NCBI RefSeq assembly: GCF_001194135.2
Contig: NC_068984.1
Span: 104,464,091 to 104,528,090 of the forward strand
DNA length: 64,000 nucleotides
Source: Octopus bimaculoides
Lineage: Eukaryota
Direction: 5' to 3'
Under the pieces are notes generated by a model that saw only the letters and a list, made by a program, of their open reading frames with translations, had not been told where the DNA came from and did not search any database. A program made the translations under genes and the position numbers. Positions 2,512-52,460 of the stretch are shown in pieces; position 1 is the first letter of the stretch; every line of letters starts with the position of its first letter.

Positions 2512-2855
2512 CTATTTTTTGGTGTGTTCATCATAACCCTTCTTCTATCAGCATTTCATCTCACTAGGGAATTTCTCAAAACATGTCTTGCAGACAGGCT
2601 TCATGTCAAATTCAGAGAATTTGGTTTTCTGGCTCATCTTCCTGTCATAGACAGATCAAGCAAAATGTCTGACACAACAGTCTTTGTTAAAGGCAGTAAA
2701 GGCATCTCCAGCTACAATATTGTTACAAAGCAAATATTTCCAAAAAGCTGGTGATAATGTGTCTCACAGTAAGCTATATTCTTCTCATAATATCTGGTGC
2801 TCAGAAATGGTTTCTCACATTTGGCACAGACAAAGTACTCAACATGCCAGTATTT
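2512..2855 (-). pseudogene. LIMS1: PINCH/LIMS (LIM4-LIM5) processed pseudogene fragment
   Basis: Minus strand reads [43 protein letters not shown], then after a frameshift [68 protein letters not shown]. This matches the PINCH C-terminus ([17 protein letters not shown]...LAYCETHYNQLFG...KFVEFDMKPVCKKCYEKFP). No introns; frameshift and in-frame stops. Confidence 0.9.
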
Positions 2856-3420
2856 TTTATGTTTTATCTTTTACTTGTTTCAGTCATTAGATTGTGGCCA
2901 TGCTGGAGCACCACATTGAAGAGTTTTTAGTTAAATGAATTGACCCAAGTACTTCTTTTAAAGCCTGGTACTTAAAACTATCAGTATGTTCCAAACCACT
3001 CTTGGTGTGTTTACATCCTTATACCTTAGTGGTTTGGCAAAAGAGACCAATAGGATAACTACTAGGCTTAAAAAACAATAAATACTGCGGTCAATTCATT
3101 TGGCTGAAAACTCTTCAAGGTGGTGCCCCAGCATGGCTCAGTCTAATGACTGAAACAAGTAAAAGCTAAAAGATATTCTTTTATTCTTTTACATGTTTTC
3201 CTCATTTGACTGTGGCCATGCTGGAGTATCACCTTAAAAAGCTTTAGTTGAAGAAATTGACCCTAGGACTTATTCTTTGTAAGCCTTGTACTTATTCTAT
3301 CAGTCTCTTTTTACTGAAACACTAACTTATCAGTTGTCAAGTGATGGTGAGGGGGACAAATAAAGACACACACATAAATATACATATATATATATATGGC
3401 TGTGTGGTAAGTAGCTGGGC

Positions 3421-7394: not shown

Positions 7395-8520
7395 TGTGTG
7401 TCCTTGAAGAACTACATAGTCAAGTTCAATAAGAAATTATATAGGAACGTCCAAGAAGCAGTTGTTGGTGCCAGTGTAGCTCGGGATGTGGCTGGCCTTT
7501 TCATGACCTGGTGGGACAAAAAAACATAGGCAATCCCTAGATGAATACTCTGTAGCTGTAATACTATACTGTAGATATGTAGGTAATATTAACATTATTG
7601 TTAGGACAATTCCAGGTAGTGATACTAAGGAAGCTGAGAGGAATACAATGGAAAACGTCCAGTGCATAGCTAACTCCATCCACCAGAGTATCAAGGTAAT
7701 GATAGACTACCCCTCTAAGGACACTAACAATAGACTCCCTGTCCGTGATACTGAAGTTTCGTTAGAGACTACAAACTACAAGGTTCAACTCCTCCCCTTA
7801 TTTATATGAAATCCATAACTTCAAAATATGTTATTCATAAGAACTCAGCTTTATCACACAATGATAAGATAAACATACTTATAGCAGATTTAGTTAGGAT
7901 AATGAATAACTTATGCCCTGTGTGCAAACCTTGTGAAATAAAAGAGACATGCACAGGACTTAATGTACCACATTCAGTCCTCTAGCTACAGCCAAAGTGT
8001 ACAGTGGAGTAGGAAGAAGTTAGATGACATTATAAGAAAGGAAACCAGTGGAACGTTGCTTCGATATTGAGGCAAATAATGTAAAAGAATAAAAAGAATT
8101 AGTGATAAAGCAAACAGAATAAATACATGGTACAACAAAGATATTTCAAGGGATAATGTTTGTAGATGCTATGCTACATGGGGAGTTATCCCTAGGTTTA
8201 GGAAGATTATGAAGGAAGTTAAACTCAATATTGAAGTTGTAGAAAAACCAGGGTGGTCCATCAGATTACAATTATGTAAGATATACTCCTTTGCAAAGAG
8301 CACATATCCTGATAGGAACTGCATTGTGTGTATTTTCAGCCCTAGTATTAACTGTAAGACCAGGAATGTAGTCTACTGTATAAAATGCATGGAGGATGAT
8401 GGTATGAACTGGAATAAGGCATATTTTGGGGAGATTTCTAGGAGTTTAGCTGAGAGGCTAAATGAACACTGGCAGGAGTATAATGACAGGATACTCTACC
8501 AACATGTCAAAGATCAACAA
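7395..8520 (+). mobile_element. Penelope-like (Naiad-like) element fragment: RT core plus GIY-YIG
   Basis: LKNYIVKFNKKLY...VGASVARDVAGLFMTWWD...RYVGNINIIV...IANSIHQSIKVMIDYPSK (RT). NCIVC...NCKTRNVVYCIKC...YFGEISRSLAERLNEH (GIY-YIG, ORF 8209-8613). Stops and frameshifts present. Confidence 0.8.
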
Positions 8521-8770
8521 ACACACACTGACCATTTTTGCACTCTCTTGCCTTCAAAAACCACATTCTCTATCTCTCTCTGTCTGCCAGTCAGTTATTT
8601 TTTGGCCATATAACAACATATGTGCTTTTCTCTGGACTATTTGCTCCTCTCTCCTTTACCTCTTCTCTGGACCTTTCCTTTTATCCGGCAAAGTGCCATG
8701 CTCGAAATGCCATTTCTACTCTTATTTTTCCATCTAAAACTTTCACTGAGCATTTATCTAATATACTCAC

Positions 8771-8826: not shown

Positions 8827-8992
8827 CTACACACACACACAGATATACACACACACCTTAAAGACGTCTAATGAAATATTTATAAGAAAATAACAGGCAA
8901 TATAAGAACAATTTGAACAAAAGAATTCCATGTTATGGATTGAATATTGTGTTAACTTTGATATAAAAATAAATAAAACTGAAAATATTTAC

Positions 8993-10969
8993 TGATATAT
9001 TCATATTCTGTATCATTGACTGTTTCATTATCACCAAAGGATTCTTCTTTTCTATTTGGAAACCCCTCATTTTTATCTACTTTTATTTCTCTTGATGCTT
9101 TCATTCTCTTGATATCCTCATAGTCATCTTCAGTAACATAACTGTATGTTTCCTCAGGGGCAGTATTTAGTGAATCTAGAGCTGTGTATACTGGTTCTTT
9201 ATTTTGGACACTTCTTATACTAGCATATAGTGGTTCGCTTCCTATTTTTGTCCAGTTACTATCATCATGTATTTTTTCATCTTTAATATTTAGAACATCC
9301 TCATATACTTCATTCGTATTATCAGGTGGTACTGTAGGCTGAATGCTTAAGATATCCTCGTACACTTTATTCATATTATCAGGTGGTACTGTAGGCTGAA
9401 TGCTTAAGATATCCTCATACACTTTATTCATATCATCAGGTGTTACTGTAGGCTGAGTGTTTAAGACATCGTCATATACTTCATTCATAATAGCAGGTGT
9501 TACTTTAGGTTGATTGTTTAAGATATCGTCATATATTTCATTCATATTAGCAGGTGTTACTTTAGGCTGAGTGTTTAAGACATCATCATATACTGGTGTT
9601 ATATCTACATCTGTTGACTTAGTGTTAAAGAATGCCAGTTCAGTATCAGATTTTTGTGTTAAAATATCATGAGATATTTTAGTGTCAGACTCATTTCTTG
9701 TTCCAATGCTGGCATGGGCTACTCCAACATTTGTCTTTCTTATGAAGTTCTCAGACATTCTGCTATCACTATCAGAGGTTCCAAGGGATATTTTAGTGTC
9801 AAACTCATTTCTTGTTCCAATGCTGGAATGGGCTACTCCAACATTTGTCTTTCTTATGAAGTTCTCAGACATTCTGCTATCACTATCAGAGGTTCCAAGG
9901 GATATTTTAGTGTCAGACTCATTTCTTGTTCCAATGCTGGCATGGGCTACTCCAACATTTGTCTTTGTTATGAAGTTCTCAGACATTCTGTTATCACTAT
10001 CAGAGGTTCCAAGCNNNNNNNNNNNNNNNNNNNNNNNNNNNNNNNNNNNNNNNNNNNNNNNNNNNNNNNNNNNNNNNNNNNNNNNNNNNNNNNNNNNNNN
10101 NNNNNNNNNNNNNNNNNNNNNNNNNNNNNNNNNNNNNNNNNNNNNNNNNNNNNNNNNNNNNNNNNNNNNNNNNNNNNNNNNNNNNNNNNNNNNNNNNNNN
10201 NNNNNNNNNNNNNNNNNNNNNNNNNNNNNNNNNNNNNNNNNNNNNNNNNNNNNNNNNNNNNNNNNNNNNNNNNNNNNNNNNNNNNNNNNAGATATTTTAG
10301 TGTCAGACTCATTTCTTGTTCCAATGCTGGCATGGGCTACTCCAACATTTGTCTTTGTTATGAAGTTCTCAGACATTCTGTTATCACTATCAGAGGTTCC
10401 AAGCGATATTTTAGTGTCAGACTCATTTCTTGTTCTAATGCTGGAATGGGCTACTCCAACATTTGTCTTTCTTATGAAGTTCTCAGACATTCTGCTATCA
10501 CTATCAGAGGTTCCAAGGGATATTTTAGTGTCAAACTCATTTCTTGTTCCAATGCTGGAAGGGGCTACTCCAACATCTGTTTTTGTTATGAAGTTCTCAG
10601 ACATTCTGCTATCACTATNNNNNNNNNNGTTCCAAGGGATATTTTAGTGTCAAACTCATTTCTTGTTCCAATGCTGGAAGGGGCTACTCCAACATCTGTT
10701 TTTGTTATGAAGTTCTCAGACATTCTGCTATCACTATCATAGGTTCCAAGGGATATTTTAGTGTCAGACTCATTTCTTGTTCCAATGCTGGAATGGGCTA
10801 CTCCAACATCTGTCTTTGTTATGAAGTTCTCAGACATTCTGCTATCTCTGCCAGAGATTCCAGGACCCTCTCGTTCATCTATAGTAAAATATTCTGCTTC
10901 TGTACTGGAAGAGAGGATTTCAACTCCAGGCATCTTTTTTGCTCCATCAACAGGCATAAAAACTGGATC
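8993..10969 (-). CDS. Large internal coding exon of an unidentified gene: 38-aa tandem repeats followed by a tyrosine-motif array (signalling adaptor or receptor cytoplasmic tail)
   Basis: Acceptor tattttttTAG|GAT CCA GTT TTT ATG at 10969 (phase 0); donor ATC A|GTAAAT at 8993/8992 (phase 1). ORFs 10586-10957 and 8952-10604 form one frame: the 10 Ns at 10619-10628 stand where other repeat units have 5 bases. The non-repetitive 680 bp (8993-9670) is stop-free on this strand despite high AT content. Confidence 0.8.
9277..9605 (-). repeat. Coding 57-bp (19-aa) repeat, six copies, each with Y-[DE]-D-[VI]
   Basis: Translation VYDDVLNTQPKVTPAN-MNEIYDDILNNQPKVTPAI-MNEVYDDVLNTQPTVTPDD-MNKVYEDILSIQPTVPPDN (x2)-TNEVYEDVLNI. 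Confidence 0.92.
9673..10847 (-). repeat. Coding minisatellite, 114-bp unit (38 aa, MSENFITKTNVGVAHSSIGTRNESDTKISLGTSDSDSR)
   Basis: Unit starts (gatattttagtgtca on +) at 9673, 9787, 9901, 10291, 10405, 10519, 10638 and 10752, spaced 114 bp wherever no gap intervenes. Units differ by a few substitutions and show no indels. Confidence 0.95.
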
Positions 10970-20469: not shown

Positions 20470-22255
20470 CTATGTACATTTCCTATTTAGTACTGGGGAT
20501 ATTTCATTTATGAGGATGCACTCCTGTATTTGTCTGAGTGTTGGGTCCTCCGGGTACTTGGATAAAATGCAGATCTCAAGTTGACCCAGTGTGCCTCCAT
20601 GCTGGTCTTTGGCATGTTGGCAGAGTATGGAGGACTGTTTCTTGTCGTCATATTGTCTCAAATGTTCATTTAGTTTCTCCACAATGCTTCTAGATGTCTC
20701 CACCCATGTATATTATGTACTCATCTTTACAAGCACCCTCTATGCACCTTATGCAGTAGACTACATTTTTACTTCTACAGTTAATGCCAGGGTTAATCTT
20801 ACATATCATGCAGTTGTCATTGGTGCATATGATATTCTCAAAGGAGTACATCCTACATAGTTGTGGTCTGATAGAACTACCTGGCTTTTCAACGATCTTA
20901 AAGTTGAGTGTGGCCTCCTTCAGATCTTTCTTAAATCTTTGGGTTAGTTCTCCATAGGGCTGTGGCCTCCACAAACATCATGCCTTGATATTTGTTGGTC
21001 TTGTATCACGTGTTCATCCTGTTTGCGTTGTCACAAAATCTCTGTATCATATTCCAGTCTTTACTTCTATATCTAGGGCAGGTAAACTTTACCATGTGAT
21101 TCTTCAAGGTGGTTCTTATGCTAGCCCCTATTGCATGCGCAATCATTTTTTTCACCTGACTGTTGTTCTCAGGGCCCTGGATGGGTATGGTCCAGCCACT
21201 CCAGTGCTCTGTGGTGCTTTTCTTCACTGCCAAGGTGATGGTGGTTGGTCTTCCCCTCTGTGACCTGGTGGGGCAGAATCTACTAATGTCATGGTTGTCT
21301 AGGTAGTTATAGTCATAGCTTAGTTTAAGGAGGTCCAGTTCCCTCATGTTGACTTCATGGAACTCTACTTCACTCTCACTGATAATCTCAATGTATTTTT
21401 CCACAGTAAAATCTATCTATAGATTGGTAGAGTGAAACTACATCCATACTACCCACTAGACAACATGTGAGGTCGTTGGAGTAGTTGCAACTACTGATTC
21501 TACTGAGAAGCTCACACAGACATCTGGGGACATTTCAATGAGTGGTTGTAACTATAATTGCAGCAGATATTTACTTTATAAACTGACCAGGAGGCTCCAT
21601 AACAGGGTTTATGTAGGGTTTATGGTCCTTACATAACCCATATAGTGTAAGAACATCGTTGTTGAATGCTTGAAAATTTTGTGCAATCCATTTCTTGGGT
21701 TGGAGTATATTGTACTACATTCCTATGTGTGCATTGAGGAGTTTTTCCACTCTTTCATGTTCTTGTGGTGCAACTTCTCTCATGCTACTGATGTGTTGTT
21801 GCATGGTCTGGACATAGTTCTGTGGGTTGTTTATCAACAGTTTGCCAGACCTGTCCATAGGGAGGCACACTAATTCCCTGTTTCAGTTTTTGTAGGCAAC
21901 AGATGAACTGAGTTGGTGGATCTCGCCCTGATTATAATTTTTAGTGGTTTTGTTGTACCAGTCTAAGATGTGTCGGAGTGTATTTCTAGCTAAGGAAATC
22001 TTTGCCTCTGTCTCACTGTCAATCTGTGGTGGGATATGTACCCTTTTGTTGAAGGGTAAGTCTGTGGGGTAGATCCTCATCATGTCGTATGATTTGTTGT
22101 TGGGGTTATAGAAGACAGAGTGTAGGGTGCTATTGGTGTTACTATTGTTGTGGTTGTTGTTGTTATGGTTGCTGGCATTGTTGTTGCTGGTGGTAGTGGT
22201 AGTGCTTGTGTTGTGTTCATTGTTGATAATATTTTTATTTGATATCCTCAAACAC
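20470..22255 (-). mobile_element. Penelope-like (Naiad-like) element, internally deleted
   Basis: LYGLCKDHK (~21620-21645); ELDLLKLS...RFCPTRSQRGRPTTIT...LKNHMVKF (21006-21404); CTNDNCMICKINPGINCRSKNVVYCIRC / ETSRSIVEKLNEH...DPTLRQIQECILI (20470-20974). The RT catalytic core is absent. Confidence 0.8.
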
Positions 22256-32039: not shown

Positions 32040-34512
32040 AATATCAGCTGGTAAGGTATAAGGAACGGACATACTGACTGACCAGGTTGAGATTCAGGCT
32101 GAATTCAGCACCGAAGATTATGGCAACAATTCTCAAAAGCATCCTGGGAAAGGCTGACAAAGTGAAAAGCGCCACAACTTCCTATATTAACAACATCCTG
32201 GTGGATGAGAGCATAGTGTTGGCAAAGGAGTCATAAGCCACTTGAAGAGTTTTGGGCTAACTGCTAAACCGCTGGAGGCAATGGAAAGAGGAGCTGCACT
32301 GGGACTCAAGCTACAGAGAGATAAGGCCAGTGCATTGGTGTTTTGGAAAGGGAATGAGATCCCAGAACTGGGCTCCAAGACAAGTAGGTGAGAACTGTTT
32401 TCTGTGTGTGGGAAGCTGCTGGGACACTACCCGATTGCAGGATGGCTCCGGATGGCATGCAGCTTCATTAAGAGGCGAGCTGAAGGAGTGAGGTGGAGTG
32501 ACAATGTGGGCAAGAAGACAACTGCCATGATGCAAGAAGTCTTGGAGAGAGTGACTGCGGAGGACCCAGTAAAAGGAAACTGGTATGTGCCCAAACTGAA
32601 GAATGGGATCATGTGGTGTGATGCCAGCAGCATAGCAATGGGAATTGTCCTGGAAATTGGAGGTGTTGTGGTGGAGGATGTGGCCTGGCTCAGGAAGAAG
32701 GATGAGTGCAACCACATCAATGTGGTGGAGCTGGATGCCATGTTGAAGGGACTGAACCTGGCCCTGAGGTGGGGGCTGTGTACCATCGAGATCCGGACTG
32801 ATTCAGCCACTGTACTTAGAGGGGTGGGATCAGTGGTCACTGGCGAGCAGAAGGTGCAAACCAAAGAGGGCGCAAAGATGCTAATAAAACTCCGTTTGGG
32901 AATTCTGGGCGAGCTAGCTGCTGAGTTTGACCTGAGGCTGAGTGTGGTTTTTGTGCTCTCTGAGAGGAATAAAGTGGACGTCCTGACCAGAGTAAAGAAA
33001 GCCTGGTTGCAGGTGCCAGAAGATCTGGAGCAAGGAGTGGCTGCAGTGTGTTGACTGAGTGACTCGGAGCTGAGAAGATTACATACCATGCATCACATGG
33101 GGGTGGACAGGACCCTGTTCCTAGCCAGGAAAGTTGACTCTGATATGACCAGGCAGAGTGTGCAAAGAGTAGTTGGGAGCTGCAACAAGTGCCAGTCCAT
33201 TGACCCTGCTCCAGGTGTGCATGAGGCAGGAAGCATTCCAGTGGANNNNNNNNNNGTCCATTGACCCTGCTCCAGGTGTGCATGAGGCAGGAAGCATTCC
33301 AGTGGAACACAACTGGAAATGACTGGCAGTGGACATGACGCACTACCGGCAGGGGACATACCTCTTGATGGTTGACTGCAGACTGGGGTGGTTGGCCATA
33401 TGGAGGGAGATGAAGACGAGGACCACGGAGGAAATCACAAGAATATTAAATGAGATATTCCTAGAATGAGGCCTCATGTAGGAGCTACTTGTGGGCAATG
33501 GCACTGCATTTCGCTTGAAAGTGCTGGGGGAAATTCTCAGCAAATGGCATGTTTGCTGTTTCTTTAGGGCAGCATACTGGCCAAGTGGCAATGGGGTTGT
33601 GGAGACGCATCATCGCAGGGGACACATCTCACCCGTTTGAGGCTGTTTTTTGACCAGGTTGAGACAGGCTGAGGAGTCAGTGCCACACAAGGCAATATTC
33701 AAGTATGAGTGGAGACATCCACATACCACATTGCTGTAACCTGCAGAAGAGAAAGAGCATGCCTTTGTACAGGTTGGGGAAGAAGTCTAGGTTAACCCAC
33801 CAAATGCATGGTGCACATCACAATGGAGAAAGGGGGACAATAACCTTTGTAAATTTGAGGAACAATGTGTCTACAGATGGCATGCCACATCATGTTTTGG
33901 ATGTGCACAGGATCATCACTGTGATGGAGCATGGAGCTATCAGTAATGGATAAGAGGATAAAGCCGGCAGCAACATGCCAGGAACTGAGGCCAGTCCTGA
34001 AGTCCCACGGTGGTTGCAGATGGAGCAGTGCTCTCCTCACTGGTTGGCTGATTATGCGATAAGTTAAGGCATGTGGTCAGGGTTGAGGAGAGGGTGTGGG
34101 CAGGTTGGTTGAATGATCTTCAGATTAGGGTGTGTGTGGTGTTATGGGCCAGGCTGTGTTGTAGGGAAGGACCAGAAGTGAGGGAGTATGCATGTCCTGT
34201 TGGAAGTGGGGCCTCTGGGTCCCACCAGAAGGGCTGTAGTGGGTATGCAGGGTCAGCGAGGCACAAGCAGCCAGTTGGCGGTGGACAGTGCATGCGAGCA
34301 GATGCGTTAGATGGTGTGGTGGCAGATGGAGCACATGGATGTTGTGAATGAACCTTCCAGATCGAGACAGAACATGTGGACTTGGTGAGCGATCCTTTCC
34401 ATACCGACAGGTAAGATTACAGCAATTCTCTCTTTGCTTCCGTTTTTTTCCTCCTTCACATCACATTAAACAGATTGGTTAATGACAGATAGTAAAGAGC
34501 AGAACTAAAACA
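32040..34512 (+). mobile_element. Gypsy LTR retrotransposon remnant (RT end, RNase H, integrase, PPT, 3' LTR)
   Basis: LTRLRFRLNSAPKIM...SYINNILV (RT); WCDASS...ELDAMLKGLNLALRWG...IRTDS...NKVDVLTR (RNase H, ORF 32404-33054); HHMGVDRT...C..C and integrase core 33080-33700. Purine tract gaggagaggg at 34085-34094 is followed by TGT...CA (LTR ~34095-34512). No 5' LTR seen. Confidence 0.85.
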
Positions 34513-34853
34513 CAGTATTTAGCTTTGTCCCTCTTTCTTCTGACAAAATATCCTGTCAAGATTAACTTAAAGTTTTCTGTAATTTATAAAATCCTTTTCT
34601 TAACAAGTAAGTAAAGCTTTGTCTTAACATACTTTACAAGTTTCTTGAACATCTTTTATATGTTTATGTATCAACAGCCTAAACAATAACAAGACCAGCA
34701 ACACTGCTAACAATGACATCAATATCAATAACATACAAGGTTTTGTAGCAAATACAGAAAATATAAGAATCTGAGTTGCTGATGGCAGTAACATTTGAGA
34801 GGGTAAATAGGGTTTGCAAGAATTACAAAAAAATAATAAATAAATGCTCTTGC

Positions 34854-34970
34854 CTGTAAACTGCTGGTGATATCATCCAGTAGATTGCTCCCCTGAGACC
34901 CCTCTGAAGAATTTAGTCTTAAAGCTGATGGAGAGTGTGTTGTTGGTGTAAAACTCATATAACTTTCATA
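34854..34970 (-). CDS. Candidate coding exon (YESYMSFTPTTHSPSALRLNSSEGSQGSNLLDDITSSLQ), GC donor
   Basis: Acceptor ttcatttcacag|TAT, donor CAG|GCAAGA, 117 nt, phase 0-0, open frame. Phase-compatible with both 39867-39941 and the 10969 acceptor. Confidence 0.5.
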
Positions 34971-36878: not shown

Positions 36879-38145
36879 ATGATCATCCCATAAGTTCTGT
36901 CCGATTTTACCTTTAATTTACAATTGAATGAAATTTAATAGTATTTTAGAATGTCTAATGGAATTAAAAAAATATTTTTATGCATTTGCATACATTTAAA
37001 CTAATTAAATATTATTTTACAGAATAATAGAATTAAAATTTCTTTGATTAAAACCCTTTCTAACATGGAAGTATTCAAAGAGCATTTGAGGCAAATAATG
37101 CTTTATGAGTACAAAAAGGAAACTCTGCAGCTGAAGCGATTTGAAACATACACTCAGTTTATGGGAAAGAATGCTTGAAGGAAAGAACTTGCAGAAGATG
37201 GCTTGCAAAATTCAGAAGTGGAGATTTCAGCCTTGAAGATGTAGATCGAACAGGACGTCCAGTTGAGTTTGATGATAAGCTCCTTGAGGTATTACTTGAA
37301 GAAAATCCTGCATTATNNNNNNNNNNNNNNNNNNNNNNNNNNNNNNNNNNNNNNNNNNNNNNNNNNNNNNNNNNNNNNNNNNNNNNNNNNNNNNNNNNNN
37401 NNNNNNNNNNNNNNNNNNNNNNNNNNNNNNNNNNNNNNNNNNNNNNNNNNNNNNNNNNNNNNNNNNNNNNNNNNNNNNNNNNNNNNNNNNNNNNNNNNNN
37501 NNNNNNNNNNNNNNNNNNNNNNNNNNNNNNNNNNNNNNNNNNNNNNNNNNNNNNNNNNNNNNNNNNNNNNNNNNNNNNNNNNNNNNNNNNNNNNNNNNNN
37601 NNNNNNNNNNNNNNNNNNNNNNNNNNNNNNNNNNNNNNNNNNNNNNNNNNNNNNNNNNNNNNNNNNNNNNNNNNNNNNNNNNNNNNNNNNNNNNNNNNNN
37701 NNNNNNNNNNNNNNNNNNNNNNNNNNNNNNNNNNNNNNNNNNNNNNNNNNNNNNNNNNNNNNNNNNNNNNNNNNNNNNNNNNNNNNNNNNNNNNNNATCA
37801 CATCACAGAAGATTGAAGAGCTTGGTTGGGAAAAAATTCCTCATCCACCTTAATCTCCCAAATTTGCTGCTCCTTCAGATTACCATTTGTTTCGTAGTTT
37901 ACAGAATCATTTGGGGGACATAACTTTCACAAGCCAGGAGAAGGTTGAAACTGACATTTCAGAGTTCTTCGCTTTGAAACCAAAAGAGTTTTACATTGAT
38001 GGAATTAAAAAGCTTGTAAATAGATGGAAGGAAGTCATAGATAATCAGGGAAAGTATATTGATGATTAAATTTCAATTAAATATAACATTTCATCACTTG
38101 TTTTCTTTATTCAAAATTCGGACAGAACTTATGGAATGACCTGAT
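36879..38145 (+). mobile_element. Mariner transposon (defective, gap inside)
   Basis: TIRs tcatcccataagttctgtccgatttt and aaaattcggacagaacttatggaatgacctga in TA-rich flanks. Transposase pieces ERTCRRWLAKFRSGDFSLEDVDRTGRP and WEKIPHPP*SP..APSDYHLFRSLQNHL...GKYIDD. Confidence 0.9.
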
Positions 38146-46287: not shown

Positions 46288-47172
46288 TATCCGTAGTCTG
46301 ACCAATAAGTATCCGGACTGTTGCCATAGTAACGAAGCTAAAGCACTCAGAGTAAAACCACTTGGCACACATTGATCTTGAACTCTGCTGTGCATGTACA
46401 CTAAGTTTTAACATTCTAGCACACTTCTGCTGTTTACAGTAGTGCTTGGAAAGAAGGTGTGTAGCATATGATCGTCACTTTGACCATGACAAAGAAAGTT
46501 AAGCAGAGAATCTGCATCAAATTCGGCCAAAAGATTGGCAATACCTGCTCAGTGGCCTATGCAAAGTTTTCAAAAAGTTTTCATCATTCTCAACACAATC
46601 AAGGCGATCTCATGCAACTGATACCCAAGTGTCTTTTTGATTAGCTGAAGGCAGTTTTGGTACAAACTTGGCAGATACACGTCTTATACCCAAATCTTCA
46701 GTGATAATGGACTGAACTGAACTGTAACTAATCTGCACATCCTCTGATAACTCATGGGTGGTGATTCGATGATTTCCCCTCACAGCTACATGCACATCTG
46801 TGATGTTTTTCTCAGTTTTGCTGGTTGCAGATCTCCCAGAACATTCGTCAGTATCAACATTTTTTCAGAACCACTTGTACACTTGTGAGTGGCTCATACA
46901 CTCCTCTCCATACACTTTCTGCAACCTTGCGTAGGCCTCTGAGCAGGTATTACCATGACAACTTTCTCTGTCATGGTCAATAATGCAATGATCATATGCT
47001 ACACACCTCTTTTCCAAGCACTGCTGTAAACAGCTGAAGTGAGCTAGAATGTTAAAACTTAGTGTGCATGCACTGCAGAGTTCAAGGTCAATCTGTGTTG
47101 AGTGGATTCACTCTGCATGCTTTAGTTTCGTTACTATGGCAACAGTTCAGACACTTATAGATCAGACCTCAT
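46288..47172. mobile_element. Mariner-derived foldback element (two inverted 5' ends)
   Basis: Long inverted arms (gtctgaccaataagtatccggactgttgccatagtaacgaagctaaagca... / ...tgctttagtttcgttactatggcaacagttcagacacttatagatcagac). Transposase N-terminal pieces on both strands (QRICIKF on +; RITTHELSEDVQISYSSVQSIITEDLGIRRVSAKFVPK on -). Confidence 0.8.
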
Positions 47173-50369: not shown

Positions 50370-52460
50370 CAGGAGAAAAGTCTTGCATATTTTTACTGTT
50401 CCACATACAAATTGTATTTGTAATATGTCATCTGGTTGATTCCTTATCTTGAAAATCCCCAGTTTTTCTAGATTGTCGCTTAGGCATTTACTAACAAAAC
50501 CAAGTGCACCAATTATTGTTGGTATAAATGTTAATTTATAATCTTAGTATTGACTATTAATTCTGCCATGAAGGGAAGCCATTGGGCCAGAGGATTTTCA
50601 AGATATAGCTAATCAGATCATCACAGATCCTCCTCCATGTTTAACAGTTGGAAGAAGGCAGTCTGGGTCAAATGCTTCTTTTGGCTGTCTCCACAAGTAT
50701 ACTTGGCCGGTGGTCGGAAATAAGGTAAAGGATGACTTGTTCGAGAAAATAGCATTCTTCCACTGCTCTAGGGACCAATTCTGTAGGTTTTTATTCCACT
50801 CTAAATATTCTCTTTCACTTTGATTTTTGAAGAAATATTTATATTAGGGCAGAGATCTCTATGATGGTACATACTTTTCTTGTCTGTTCTAAACAATGAT
50901 ATACGACATGTTATGTTCGCACTTGATAGAAGTTTTGATGGGATCGTTTCACCAATATCCCTTGTGCTGATGTTTATGTATGTATTCAACAAAGTGTGTG
51001 TGTGTTTTTGTGTGCAGGGTGGGGTGGTTCACTATATTTAACCCAGGACAGTCTTTTTTGGGGATCGCATTGCATATTGTTTTAGTGACAATATCAAATT
51101 GCATGAGAGGTAGTTTAGCGATGGCATTATTGGGCAGTTGCTTATCACATGTGTGATGTCTTTCACATAAGCAAGTTCAGTTGCATTTTAGGGCTCTAAG
51201 AGCTTTACTGTCTCTTTAGTTCATGGGGTATTTTGTAGTAATTTCCTGCTTTTGGAGTGCAAAAACATAGCTTTTGAAGTGTGATATGATGTTGCAGTGC
51301 CAAGTTCAAGACAGGTTGCACTTCATGCCAATATTAATGTTGTCTTCAGGTTTTCAGGAAGTATATCCATGCATAGTGTCTTTTGATATACTGAACATTT
51401 CACATCCACGTCTCCTTTGAAGTATGTTAGCCCAGCTGTTTTGAAGTTGTATAAGAGGTCATCAGGAAGAGTGCTTCCTAAGAAGCTCATTACTTAACAC
51501 ATAGAATGGTGTTCCCTTTGCTTTTCAGCACTAGGCTTTAGGCTTATGTATTTATTTTTGCTGCTGTTGTTTAGCAGTTGCCTTCTAAGAGATACTGTTC
51601 AACATTTGAAGGCTGTCAGCACTGATCTCATGCCTCTACCTCCTTAATCTTCTCTTTGATAGAGACTGTCAATATCACTGTTTCTGTGGAAGTTTCCAGT
51701 TGTTGTCAGGATCTTGTGGATTTTAATATCTATGGAGTGGATTTCCTTTACAAACCAGTTAAGTATCCTAAATGTTGGTATCAGCACTGATGCTGCAAAT
51801 GCAGTGTGGAAAAATGTCTTTTTGTAAGAGAAGAGTTCTGACTGCTATATTTTTCTAAGACTGGTGTAATATTCTTGAGTAACTCTAGCTTTATTCACAG
51901 CACCTCAATAGAGCAGGTGAGAAGAGAAACCATTGGGGCACAAGTTTTGTGTCTGGGTAACTAATTTTCCACGTTCAACAATTAAATATCTTCTTTTGAC
52001 CAAATTGCATTCCTATATTATCTAAAACTGTTGTTATGAAGTTCAGCTGTTTTGGGGGCATTGTAAACATTTTTAGTATAATTCTTCAGTTCATCCACAT
52101 AGAAATTGTGGGTTACATTGGTATATCTAACAGTTTCAAATCCTAGCATGAGCCATTAAATTTGTGTTGCAGAAATGATAATGGATTTAATGACAAGATA
52201 AACAGAATTACAGAAAGACTATCTCCTTGAAATATTCTCTTAGAAATATTTATATCATCAGAGACAATCATTCCATTCTGAACCACAATGGATCATCAAG
52301 CAAAGGAACACTTTATTGCATTATGATACAGAGATAATTAGACATTTGATCTCTGTAATATAATGCAATTAAGTGGTTCTTAGATGATCTATTATGGTTC
52401 AGAATCCAACAGCCCTTGGAACATCCAATGCAGAAGTTGCAATTAACCACAGTGGTGAAA
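50370..52460 (-). mobile_element. R4/Dong-like non-LTR retrotransposon remnant (RT plus REL endonuclease)
   Basis: IFQGDSLSVILFILSLNPLSF...THNFYVDELKNY (RT); DIDSLY..GGRGM; VFALQKQEI; C-terminal IPTIIGALGFV...GTVKICKTFL. Interrupted by a Tc1 fragment. Confidence 0.75.
50549..50808 (-). mobile_element. Internal Tc1 transposase fragment without TIRs, inverted relative to the neighbouring Tc1
   Basis: Reverse complement of ~49578-49838, with scattered substitutions. Confidence 0.9.

Follow-up and report, generated by a model that had tools for sequence, protein, structure and literature searches.

We analysed a 64,000-nucleotide stretch of the Octopus bimaculoides genome (contig NC_068984.1, positions 104,464,091 to 104,528,090; hereafter the window, in whose own coordinates all positions are given) and, within it, a tandem array of tyrosine motifs encoded on the minus strand. 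The array is a coding minisatellite in a 2-kb internal exon of a large multi-exon octopus gene. The open frame of this exon starts directly after a polypyrimidine tract and an AG (ttttttag/GATCC, 10969). Read from there, it encodes in succession 38-residue repeats, a 26-residue linker, the 19-residue array and a tyrosine-rich tail of about 100 residues, and it ends at ATCA/gtaaat, with 8993 as the last exon base and the donor gtaaat at 8987-8992. A HMMER search with a profile of the exon against 1.84 billion representatives identified the O. vulgaris orthologue, CAI9721300.1 (A0AA36AS58; E 1e-237), a 1319-residue protein labelled 'Hypothetical predicted protein [Octopus vulgaris]', whose gene occupies 218 kb of the O. 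vulgaris reference genome (GCA_951406725.2; PMC10700109). A tblastn alignment of this protein on the window covers 10966-8994. In CAI9721300.1 the sequence runs on from TEYEYI, the last residues of our exon, into 541 further residues that begin with ITHK; the O. vulgaris gene model thus splices at the donor that follows 8993. A preliminary description of this DNA had already placed the array in the coding part of an exon, and our edges match the earlier ones.

We located one further exon of the gene in the window, a preceding exon of 39 codons (Table 1). It has the acceptor cacag/TAT and the GC donor CAG/gcaaga, and it ends in phase 0, matching the large exon, from which it is separated by an intron of about 23.9 kb of the GC-AG type (GC at 34852-34853, minus strand). 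No exons for residues 1-60 and 779-1319 of CAI9721300.1 were found within the window by tblastn, and among all minus-strand open reading frames (ORFs) of the window only transposon debris was seen besides the 39-codon exon. Two assembly gaps lie within the large exon, and the shorter one, of 10 N, seems to shift the reading frame, which makes the exon appear as two pieces in ORF lists. The longest stop-free and gap-free stretch in the window consists of 353 codons of the exon's frame. At the given base composition, the probability of a 255-codon open frame is about 5e-10 per position, the repeat periods of 57 and 114 bp are both multiples of 3, and the acceptor and donor of the large exon are conserved in two species. 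A chance open frame is effectively excluded for the array exon.

Tandem Repeats Finder detected a 57-bp period at 9297-9594 (5.2 copies, 88% matches, no indels), and translation of the minus strand revealed six [VI]-Y-[DE]-D-[VI]-L motifs with a Tyr-to-Tyr spacing of exactly 19 residues. The preliminary description had counted six 57-bp units. The six motifs and their exact spacing stand, whereas only five of the units are complete; the sixth shares the 18-nucleotide motif alone and then continues into unique tail sequence. It had also reported two almost identical units, which are U4 and U5 (3 of 57 nucleotides differ), and acidic flanks around each motif. The latter was overstated: the acidic residues lie at +1 and +2, within the motif. 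At -2, three units have E, two have K and one has P. No further copy of the 57-bp repeat was found in the rest of the 64-kb window, and the repeat is thus not a dispersed element. A regular-expression search of the exon returned seven Y[DE][DE][VI] sites, the six of the array and DDYEDI downstream of it; the broader context Y-[DE]-[DE]-[VILP] is matched seven times in the window exon, five times in CAI9721300.1 and four times in a third octopus species described below.

The tail that follows the array holds five more conserved tyrosine sites. In 12 of the 16 tyrosines, position +3 is occupied by L, I or V, residues whose background frequency is 0.19, and the net charge of the region is -29. 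Two of the tail tyrosines form a YASI-x9-YTAL pair within the best-conserved block of the exon, PLYASIRSVQNKEPVYTA, whose 18 codons show three synonymous and no non-synonymous differences from the third octopus species. Each Tyr of the pair has Glu at -3, and both the pair and its spacing are retained across the three species. The same segment contains the pentapeptide EPLYA (as EPLYASI), which reads DPLYA in the third species. Upstream of the array, the linker HDILTQKSDTELAFFNTKSTDVDITP shows no difference between the window and O. vulgaris and is 73% identical in the third octopus species. It is preceded by the 38-residue repeat, which is rich in Ser and Thr, carries an SDSDS cluster, lacks Tyr and has no Pfam match.

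Table 1. Features of the array-bearing gene and other elements of the window
Feature	Positions	Strand	Description
Large internal coding exon	8993..10969	-	Residues 100-778 of O. vulgaris orthologue CAI9721300.1
Tyrosine-motif array	9291..9593	-	U1-U5 full units, 9309-9593; sixth motif, 9291-9308 (Tandem Repeats Finder, regular-expression counts)
U1	9537-9593	-	VYDDVLNTQPKVTPANMNE
U2	9480-9536	-	IYDDILNNQPKVTPAIMNE
U3	9423-9479	-	VYDDVLNTQPTVTPDDMNK
U4	9366-9422	-	VYEDILSIQPTVPPDNMNK
U5	9309-9365	-	VYEDILSIQPTVPPDNTNE
U6	9252-9308	-	Begins VYEDVL; 18-nucleotide motif, then unique tail sequence
ITAM-like pair YASI-x9-YTAL	9177..9227	-	Within block PLYASIRSVQNKEPVYTA (regular expression)
EPLYA pentapeptide	9218-9232	-	
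Extra Y[DE][DE][VI] site	9111..9128	-	DDYEDI here, HDYEDV in O. vulgaris, DNYEDI in the third species
TEYEYI	8994..9011	-	Last exon residues; invariant in 3 of 3 species
26-residue linker	9594..9671	-	HDILTQKSDTELAFFNTKSTDVDITP; unique, between the two repeat arrays
38-residue (114-bp) tandem repeat	9673..10862	-	LGTSDSDSRMSENFI.KT.VGVAHSSIGTRNE.DTKIS (Tandem Repeats Finder)
Assembly gap	10015-10289		275 N
Assembly gap	10619-10628		10 N
Preceding 39-codon exon	34854..34970	-	YESYMSFTPTTHSPSALRLNSSEGSQGSNLLDDITSSLQ; tblastn with residues 61-99 of CAI9721300.1, E 2e-14
LIM-domain fragment	2600-2870	-	Only the second half of the domain matches (Pfam LIM, E 8.9e-9)
GIY-YIG-like ORF	8209-8613	+	Cys-rich segment, then GIY-YIG-like segment
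GIY-YIG-like ORF	20473-20977	-	Cys-rich segment, then GIY-YIG-like segment
Retroelement ORF	32404-33054	+	DUF7047, RVT_3 and RNase H matches
Mariner/Tc1-type transposase fragment (by eye)	46613-47107	-	
Mariner/Tc1-type transposase fragment (by eye)	50616-50843	-	
Mariner/Tc1-type transposase fragment (by eye)	37175-37316	+	

A word-indexed protein search with the exon tail gave a sole match, a 251-residue ORF on 1.2-kb genomic contigs of the third octopus species. This relative forms a cluster of four near-identical members, one per sequencing run, and two of the contigs were traced to SRR11869390 and SRR11869391. At the protein level the exon of the window is 82% identical to O. vulgaris and 75% identical to the third species. 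The profile search recovered CAI9721300.1 and the third-species ORF as the sole relatives and none outside Octopus among its 1.84 billion representatives; three other matches were rejected as unrelated repeat proteins matching by composition. The word-indexed search missed CAI9721300.1 despite its presence in the collection and a 45-residue identical stretch, so that the negatives of that search, including the lack of any homologue for the N- and C-terminal ends of CAI9721300.1, are weak evidence of absence. Pfam holds no family for the exon, for full-length CAI9721300.1 or for its C-terminal end, PDB sequence searches returned noise only (a C/EBP leucine zipper at E 0.3, an annexin at E ~1), and a literature search found no paper treating such an array in octopus. 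The gene therefore belongs to no described family, in keeping with the preliminary description, which had called its product an apparently uncharacterised cephalopod protein.

The number of motifs and the make-up of the array differ among the three species. The window has two units of the type QPKV/QPAV...NE and three of the type QPTV.PD..NK, O. vulgaris has three and none, and the third species has one of each; the terminal motif is present once in all of them, and the totals are six, four and three. From these sequences, both unit types and the terminal motif are ancestral, and since the make-up differs in each species, units were gained and lost independently in each lineage. This pattern of turnover suggests unequal crossing-over or replication slippage, and the varying copy number bears out the recent tandem duplication of the motif proposed earlier. 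The neighbouring 38-residue repeat varies as well, with 12 units in O. vulgaris, one in the third species and at least eight in the window, a lower bound because the two assembly gaps interrupt this array. Within the third species, all four members carry three motifs and no array-length polymorphism was seen. These members differ at two protein positions, both amino-acid-changing (V3I and G156R), and the two contigs differ at one further silent base. The array thus has the attributes of a coding minisatellite: its units run head to tail, their period is a multiple of 3, and related genomes do not have the same number of them.

We examined the evolution of the exon at the codon level, where all tests compare the window with DNA of the third species only. 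The intron flanks are 86-88% identical between the two and contain 14 indel events over some 500 aligned columns; the coding part is 88% identical at the nucleotide level and free of indels across its 255 aligned codons. Were substitutions of the observed density placed at random, the frame would stay open in only 5-6% of cases. The ratio of non-synonymous to synonymous divergence (dN/dS) is 1.9 in the N-terminal part, 4.9 in the linker and 0.6 in the tail. The frame of the exon is therefore protected while most of its residues are free to change, as expected of a disordered region, and AlphaFold2 agrees. In a model of the third-species ORF, built on an alignment of three rows, the region is predicted to be disordered, and the mean predicted local distance difference test (pLDDT) score of the ORF is 37.4, with no residue at or above 70; with so shallow an alignment, the low pLDDT is supportive of disorder rather than conclusive. 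The model places a short helix on each 19-residue unit (third-species residues 93-139, pLDDT below 50). The hydrophobic pattern of the units (i, i+1, i+4, i+5) could give an amphipathic helix on binding.

CAI9721300.1 as a whole comprises a disordered acidic N-terminal half of about 780 residues and a C-terminal part of 541 residues. The word-indexed search with the C-terminal part gave a single match, a 372-residue relative, for which helices of 35, 103 and 93 residues are predicted at pLDDT 70-90, with disordered stretches between them. The C-terminal 541 residues are thus probably, to judge from the 372 that were modelled, for the most part a long-helix, coiled-coil-like rod. A by-eye resemblance of the C-terminus to GRIP-domain golgins was followed up and rejected: Pfam was empty to E 10 and the PDB gave only the annexin match.

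An aliphatic residue followed by Tyr, two acidic residues and Val or Ile is a general ligand class of Src-family and Nck SH2 domains. The pYDDV motif of ADAP and, when phosphorylated, the related YDDI pull down SLP-76, Nck1/2, PLCg1, p85, Crk, Gads and RasGAP (PMC2908683), which documents the earlier statement that acidic phosphotyrosine motifs of this kind are SH2 ligands. From the chemistry of the motif only, we infer, tentatively and as our favoured reading, that the array constitutes phosphotyrosine docking sites for SH2 domains of the Src, Nck and SLP-76 class on a probably dimeric scaffold. The array tyrosines would be phosphorylated by kinases of the Src, Syk or Abl type, and each pY-[DE]-[DE]-[VI] would then bind an SH2 domain of the Src-family, Nck or SLP-76 class. 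If it dimerises through its helical part, the protein would be a multivalent phosphotyrosine docking scaffold, the valency of which would differ between species, with three, four or six array sites plus the tail sites. At the level of sequence and prediction, the region combines the context of the ligand class, a disordered chain and a motif more constrained than its spacer.

This last point comes from a comparison of the nine units for which DNA is available in the window and the third species. Firstly, motif and spacer vary in the same fraction of their nucleotides (8 of 18 and 17 of 39, respectively). Secondly, the changes in the motif are exclusively synonymous (TAT/TAC, TTA/CTA, GTA/GTG, GAT/GAC, GTC/GTT) or exchange V with I or D with E. 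Thirdly, radical steps number 0 in the motif and 11 of 19 in the spacer (Fisher p=0.004). Across the three species, the array tyrosine is kept in 13 of 13 units.

Several observations weigh against the docking-site reading. The constraint test draws on few units that are recent duplicates, and it takes the minimum number of steps in each column instead of following them along a tree. Over the whole exon the Nei-Gojobori dN/dS is 1.0, the differences are spread evenly over the three codon positions (24/27/23), and most of the exon is without detectable protein-level constraint. Tyrosine is the best-kept residue type among those with more than two columns at single-copy sites, without reaching significance, and the single-copy tyrosine columns are invariant in 7 of 9 cases, compared with 65% of all columns (p=0.33). 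The preliminary description had predicted that the tyrosines would be conserved beyond the spacer residues; the outcome lies in that direction within the array, where every tyrosine is kept and the motif core is conservative relative to the spacer, and the single-copy comparison points the same way without being significant on its own. Conservation in YxxPhi windows does not significantly exceed that elsewhere in the exon (40/50 versus 151/205, p=0.47). Pfam detected no membrane anchor and no PH, PTB, SH2 or SH3 domain that would bring the protein near a tyrosine kinase. Finally, five of the six array motifs also fit a phosphorylation-independent pattern, the extended LC3-interacting region (xLIR), discussed below.

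Comparison with known systems places the array close to several of them in motif or layout. ADAP (FYB1) shares the core [VI]-Y-D-D-[VI], including the aliphatic residue before the Tyr, repeated in a disordered stretch of a cytosolic adaptor, but the octopus protein has neither hSH3 domains, according to Pfam, nor sequence homology to ADAP outside the motif, and its sites are exact tandem copies of species-variable number, whereas those of ADAP are dispersed and single. The nephrin tail likewise carries three acidic YDxV-type sites in a disordered chain, 17 and 24 residues apart in the construct in which the clustering threshold of nephrin, Nck and N-WASP was found to depend on the number of phosphotyrosine sites (PMC4238058), and the octopus spacing of 19 lies in this range. 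Nephrin is an Ig-superfamily transmembrane receptor, whereas the octopus protein lacks Ig and FN3 domains (Pfam) and a transmembrane segment (by eye) and has a predicted coiled-coil C-terminal half instead. Multiplication of a tyrosine docking motif in a disordered region is also found in the substrate domain of p130Cas, in Helicobacter CagA and in Chlamydia Tarp. In these injected bacterial effectors, the copy number of the tyrosine repeats varies between strains via recombination between repeats. The motif classes differ (YxxP in Cas), and the octopus array lies in a host gene and varies between species.

Two further comparisons concern the tail. p140Cap (SRCIN1) is a cytosolic scaffold with a tyrosine-rich region and a coiled coil, and EPLYA, its Csk-binding phosphosite motif (PMC3561454), is present in the octopus exon; there is no homology detectable by Pfam or the HMMER profile search, a five-residue match can arise by chance, and the third species has DPLYA. 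The YASI-x9-YTAL pair resembles an immunoreceptor tyrosine-based activation motif (ITAM) in its extended form, as in Drosophila Draper, and lies in the best-conserved block. The canonical x6-8 spacing gives no match in the exon and only the extended x6-12 does, the octopus protein is not a receptor chain, and the array motifs, 15 residues apart from one YxxV to the next Y, fall outside any ITAM definition. Judged by the defining features that we compared, the octopus protein is outside the families of ADAP, nephrin, p140Cap, the ITAM receptors and the golgins.

The docking-site reading has to be weighed against a drifting coding minisatellite in which the motif itself would be functionless and its apparent conservation a product of recent duplication and gene conversion, an explanation that we consider unlikely yet worth taking seriously. 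It would accommodate the whole-exon dN/dS and a nucleotide identity equal to that of the introns, as well as a copy number that is free to change both in the 19-residue unit (3/4/6) and in its neighbour, the Tyr-less 38-residue unit (1/at least 8/12). Units are also more alike within a species than orthologous units are between species, which is concerted evolution, and both protein-level polymorphisms among the four third-species runs change an amino acid. What speaks against drift is that the motif codons vary as much as the spacer in their nucleotides and yet show no radical replacement. The TAT/TAC and TTA/CTA changes indicate that Tyr and Leu codons have mutated while the amino acid was kept. 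Moreover, the same motif class recurs at conserved single-copy sites outside the array (DDYEDI and TEYEYI), and the frame is maintained without indels.

Alternatively, the motif could be a phosphorylation-independent short linear motif, chiefly an Atg8/LC3-interacting region (LIR), and the protein an autophagy receptor or adaptor that combines a coiled coil with multiple LIRs; we regard this as rather improbable, together with its looser version, an acidic amphipathic helix like those of LD or transactivation motifs. Selective autophagy receptors commonly have a disordered acidic region and, after it, a long coiled coil, and the models give the octopus protein this layout. The array motifs share with the LIRs of such receptors an aromatic-x-x-aliphatic core with acidic residues in a disordered region beside a coiled coil. 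AlphaFold puts short, low-confidence helices on each unit, and the constraint on motif versus spacer fits LIRs as well as SH2 ligands. LIRs favour acidic residues or Ser/Thr at -2, but two units have Lys there. In addition, the Tyr is invariant and never replaced by Phe or Trp in any unit of the three species, although a LIR would tolerate them, and 12 of 16 tyrosines, including those of the non-acidic YASI and YTAL, stand in YxxPhi contexts typical of SH2 ligands. As for the patterns themselves, five of the six array motifs, PVYTAL and DDYEDI match xLIR, but the match is of low specificity, the authors of the pattern reporting an unacceptable fraction of false positives, and the canonical LIR pattern is matched by none of the six array motifs and only by DDYEDI (PMC5119064).

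That the array is no gene feature at all, but an open frame arisen by chance or an artefact of annotating repetitive DNA, is most improbable. The pipeline behind the O. vulgaris model does include ab initio prediction (PMC10700109), and no domain or distant homologue was found by Pfam, PDB or HMMER profile searches. Against this stand the chance probability of the open frame, its preservation beside indel-rich flanks, the small share of cases (5-6%) in which random substitutions would have left it open, the acceptor and donor conserved in two species and an upstream exon of matching phase in the window. Equally remote is a role in sorting, with the motifs as YxxPhi signals recognised by mu subunits of clathrin adaptor complexes: the 12 of 16 tyrosines in YxxPhi contexts would suit it, but such signals act in membrane proteins, within their cytosolic tails, inspection of the 1319-residue orthologue by eye alone showed neither a hydrophobic transmembrane stretch nor a signal peptide, and an array of six would to our knowledge be unprecedented.

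The window contains further elements (Table 1). The LIM-domain fragment resembles, by eye, LIM3-LIM4 of PINCH/LIMS; with a stop and a frameshift just downstream, it probably represents a piece of a pseudogene with no relation to the array gene. Its ORF at 2715-2870 was considered as the next exon, which would have made the protein a paxillin- or PINCH-like adaptor, and was rejected, as the frame breaks just downstream and CAI9721300.1 has no LIM domain. The two GIY-YIG-like ORFs are related to each other and look by eye like the endonuclease end of Penelope-like retroelements, with no Pfam match; one of them lies about 340 bp beyond the in-frame stop (8952-8954) that follows the donor of the large exon. 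The retroelement ORF is overlapped by long opposite-strand ORFs in a GC-rich (50%) patch. The mariner/Tc1-type fragments were recognised by helix-turn-helix and DDE parts, and the two that were searched in Pfam gave no match.

Docking-motif arrays in disordered proteins are a known route to multivalent signalling hubs. Here, a known motif class has been multiplied in a gene without known relatives outside Octopus, and its copy number depends on the species. It is conceivable, if doubtful, that the protein is an orphan scaffold of the octopus lineage in which repeat slippage tunes the valency of the docking array (3, 4 or 6, doubled if dimeric) and thereby sets the threshold of SH2 clustering; such a scaffold would amount to a natural experiment on how valency controls condensate formation in a lineage that is neither vertebrate nor pathogen. 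If the sites are not phosphorylated and read, a short motif is still held constant in an almost neutrally evolving exon. If they are phosphorylated and read by SH2 domains, the array would offer a naturally varying valency series for testing ideas on clustering, a first handle on a cephalopod-specific signalling scaffold and an example of signalling hubs arising from minisatellite expansion.

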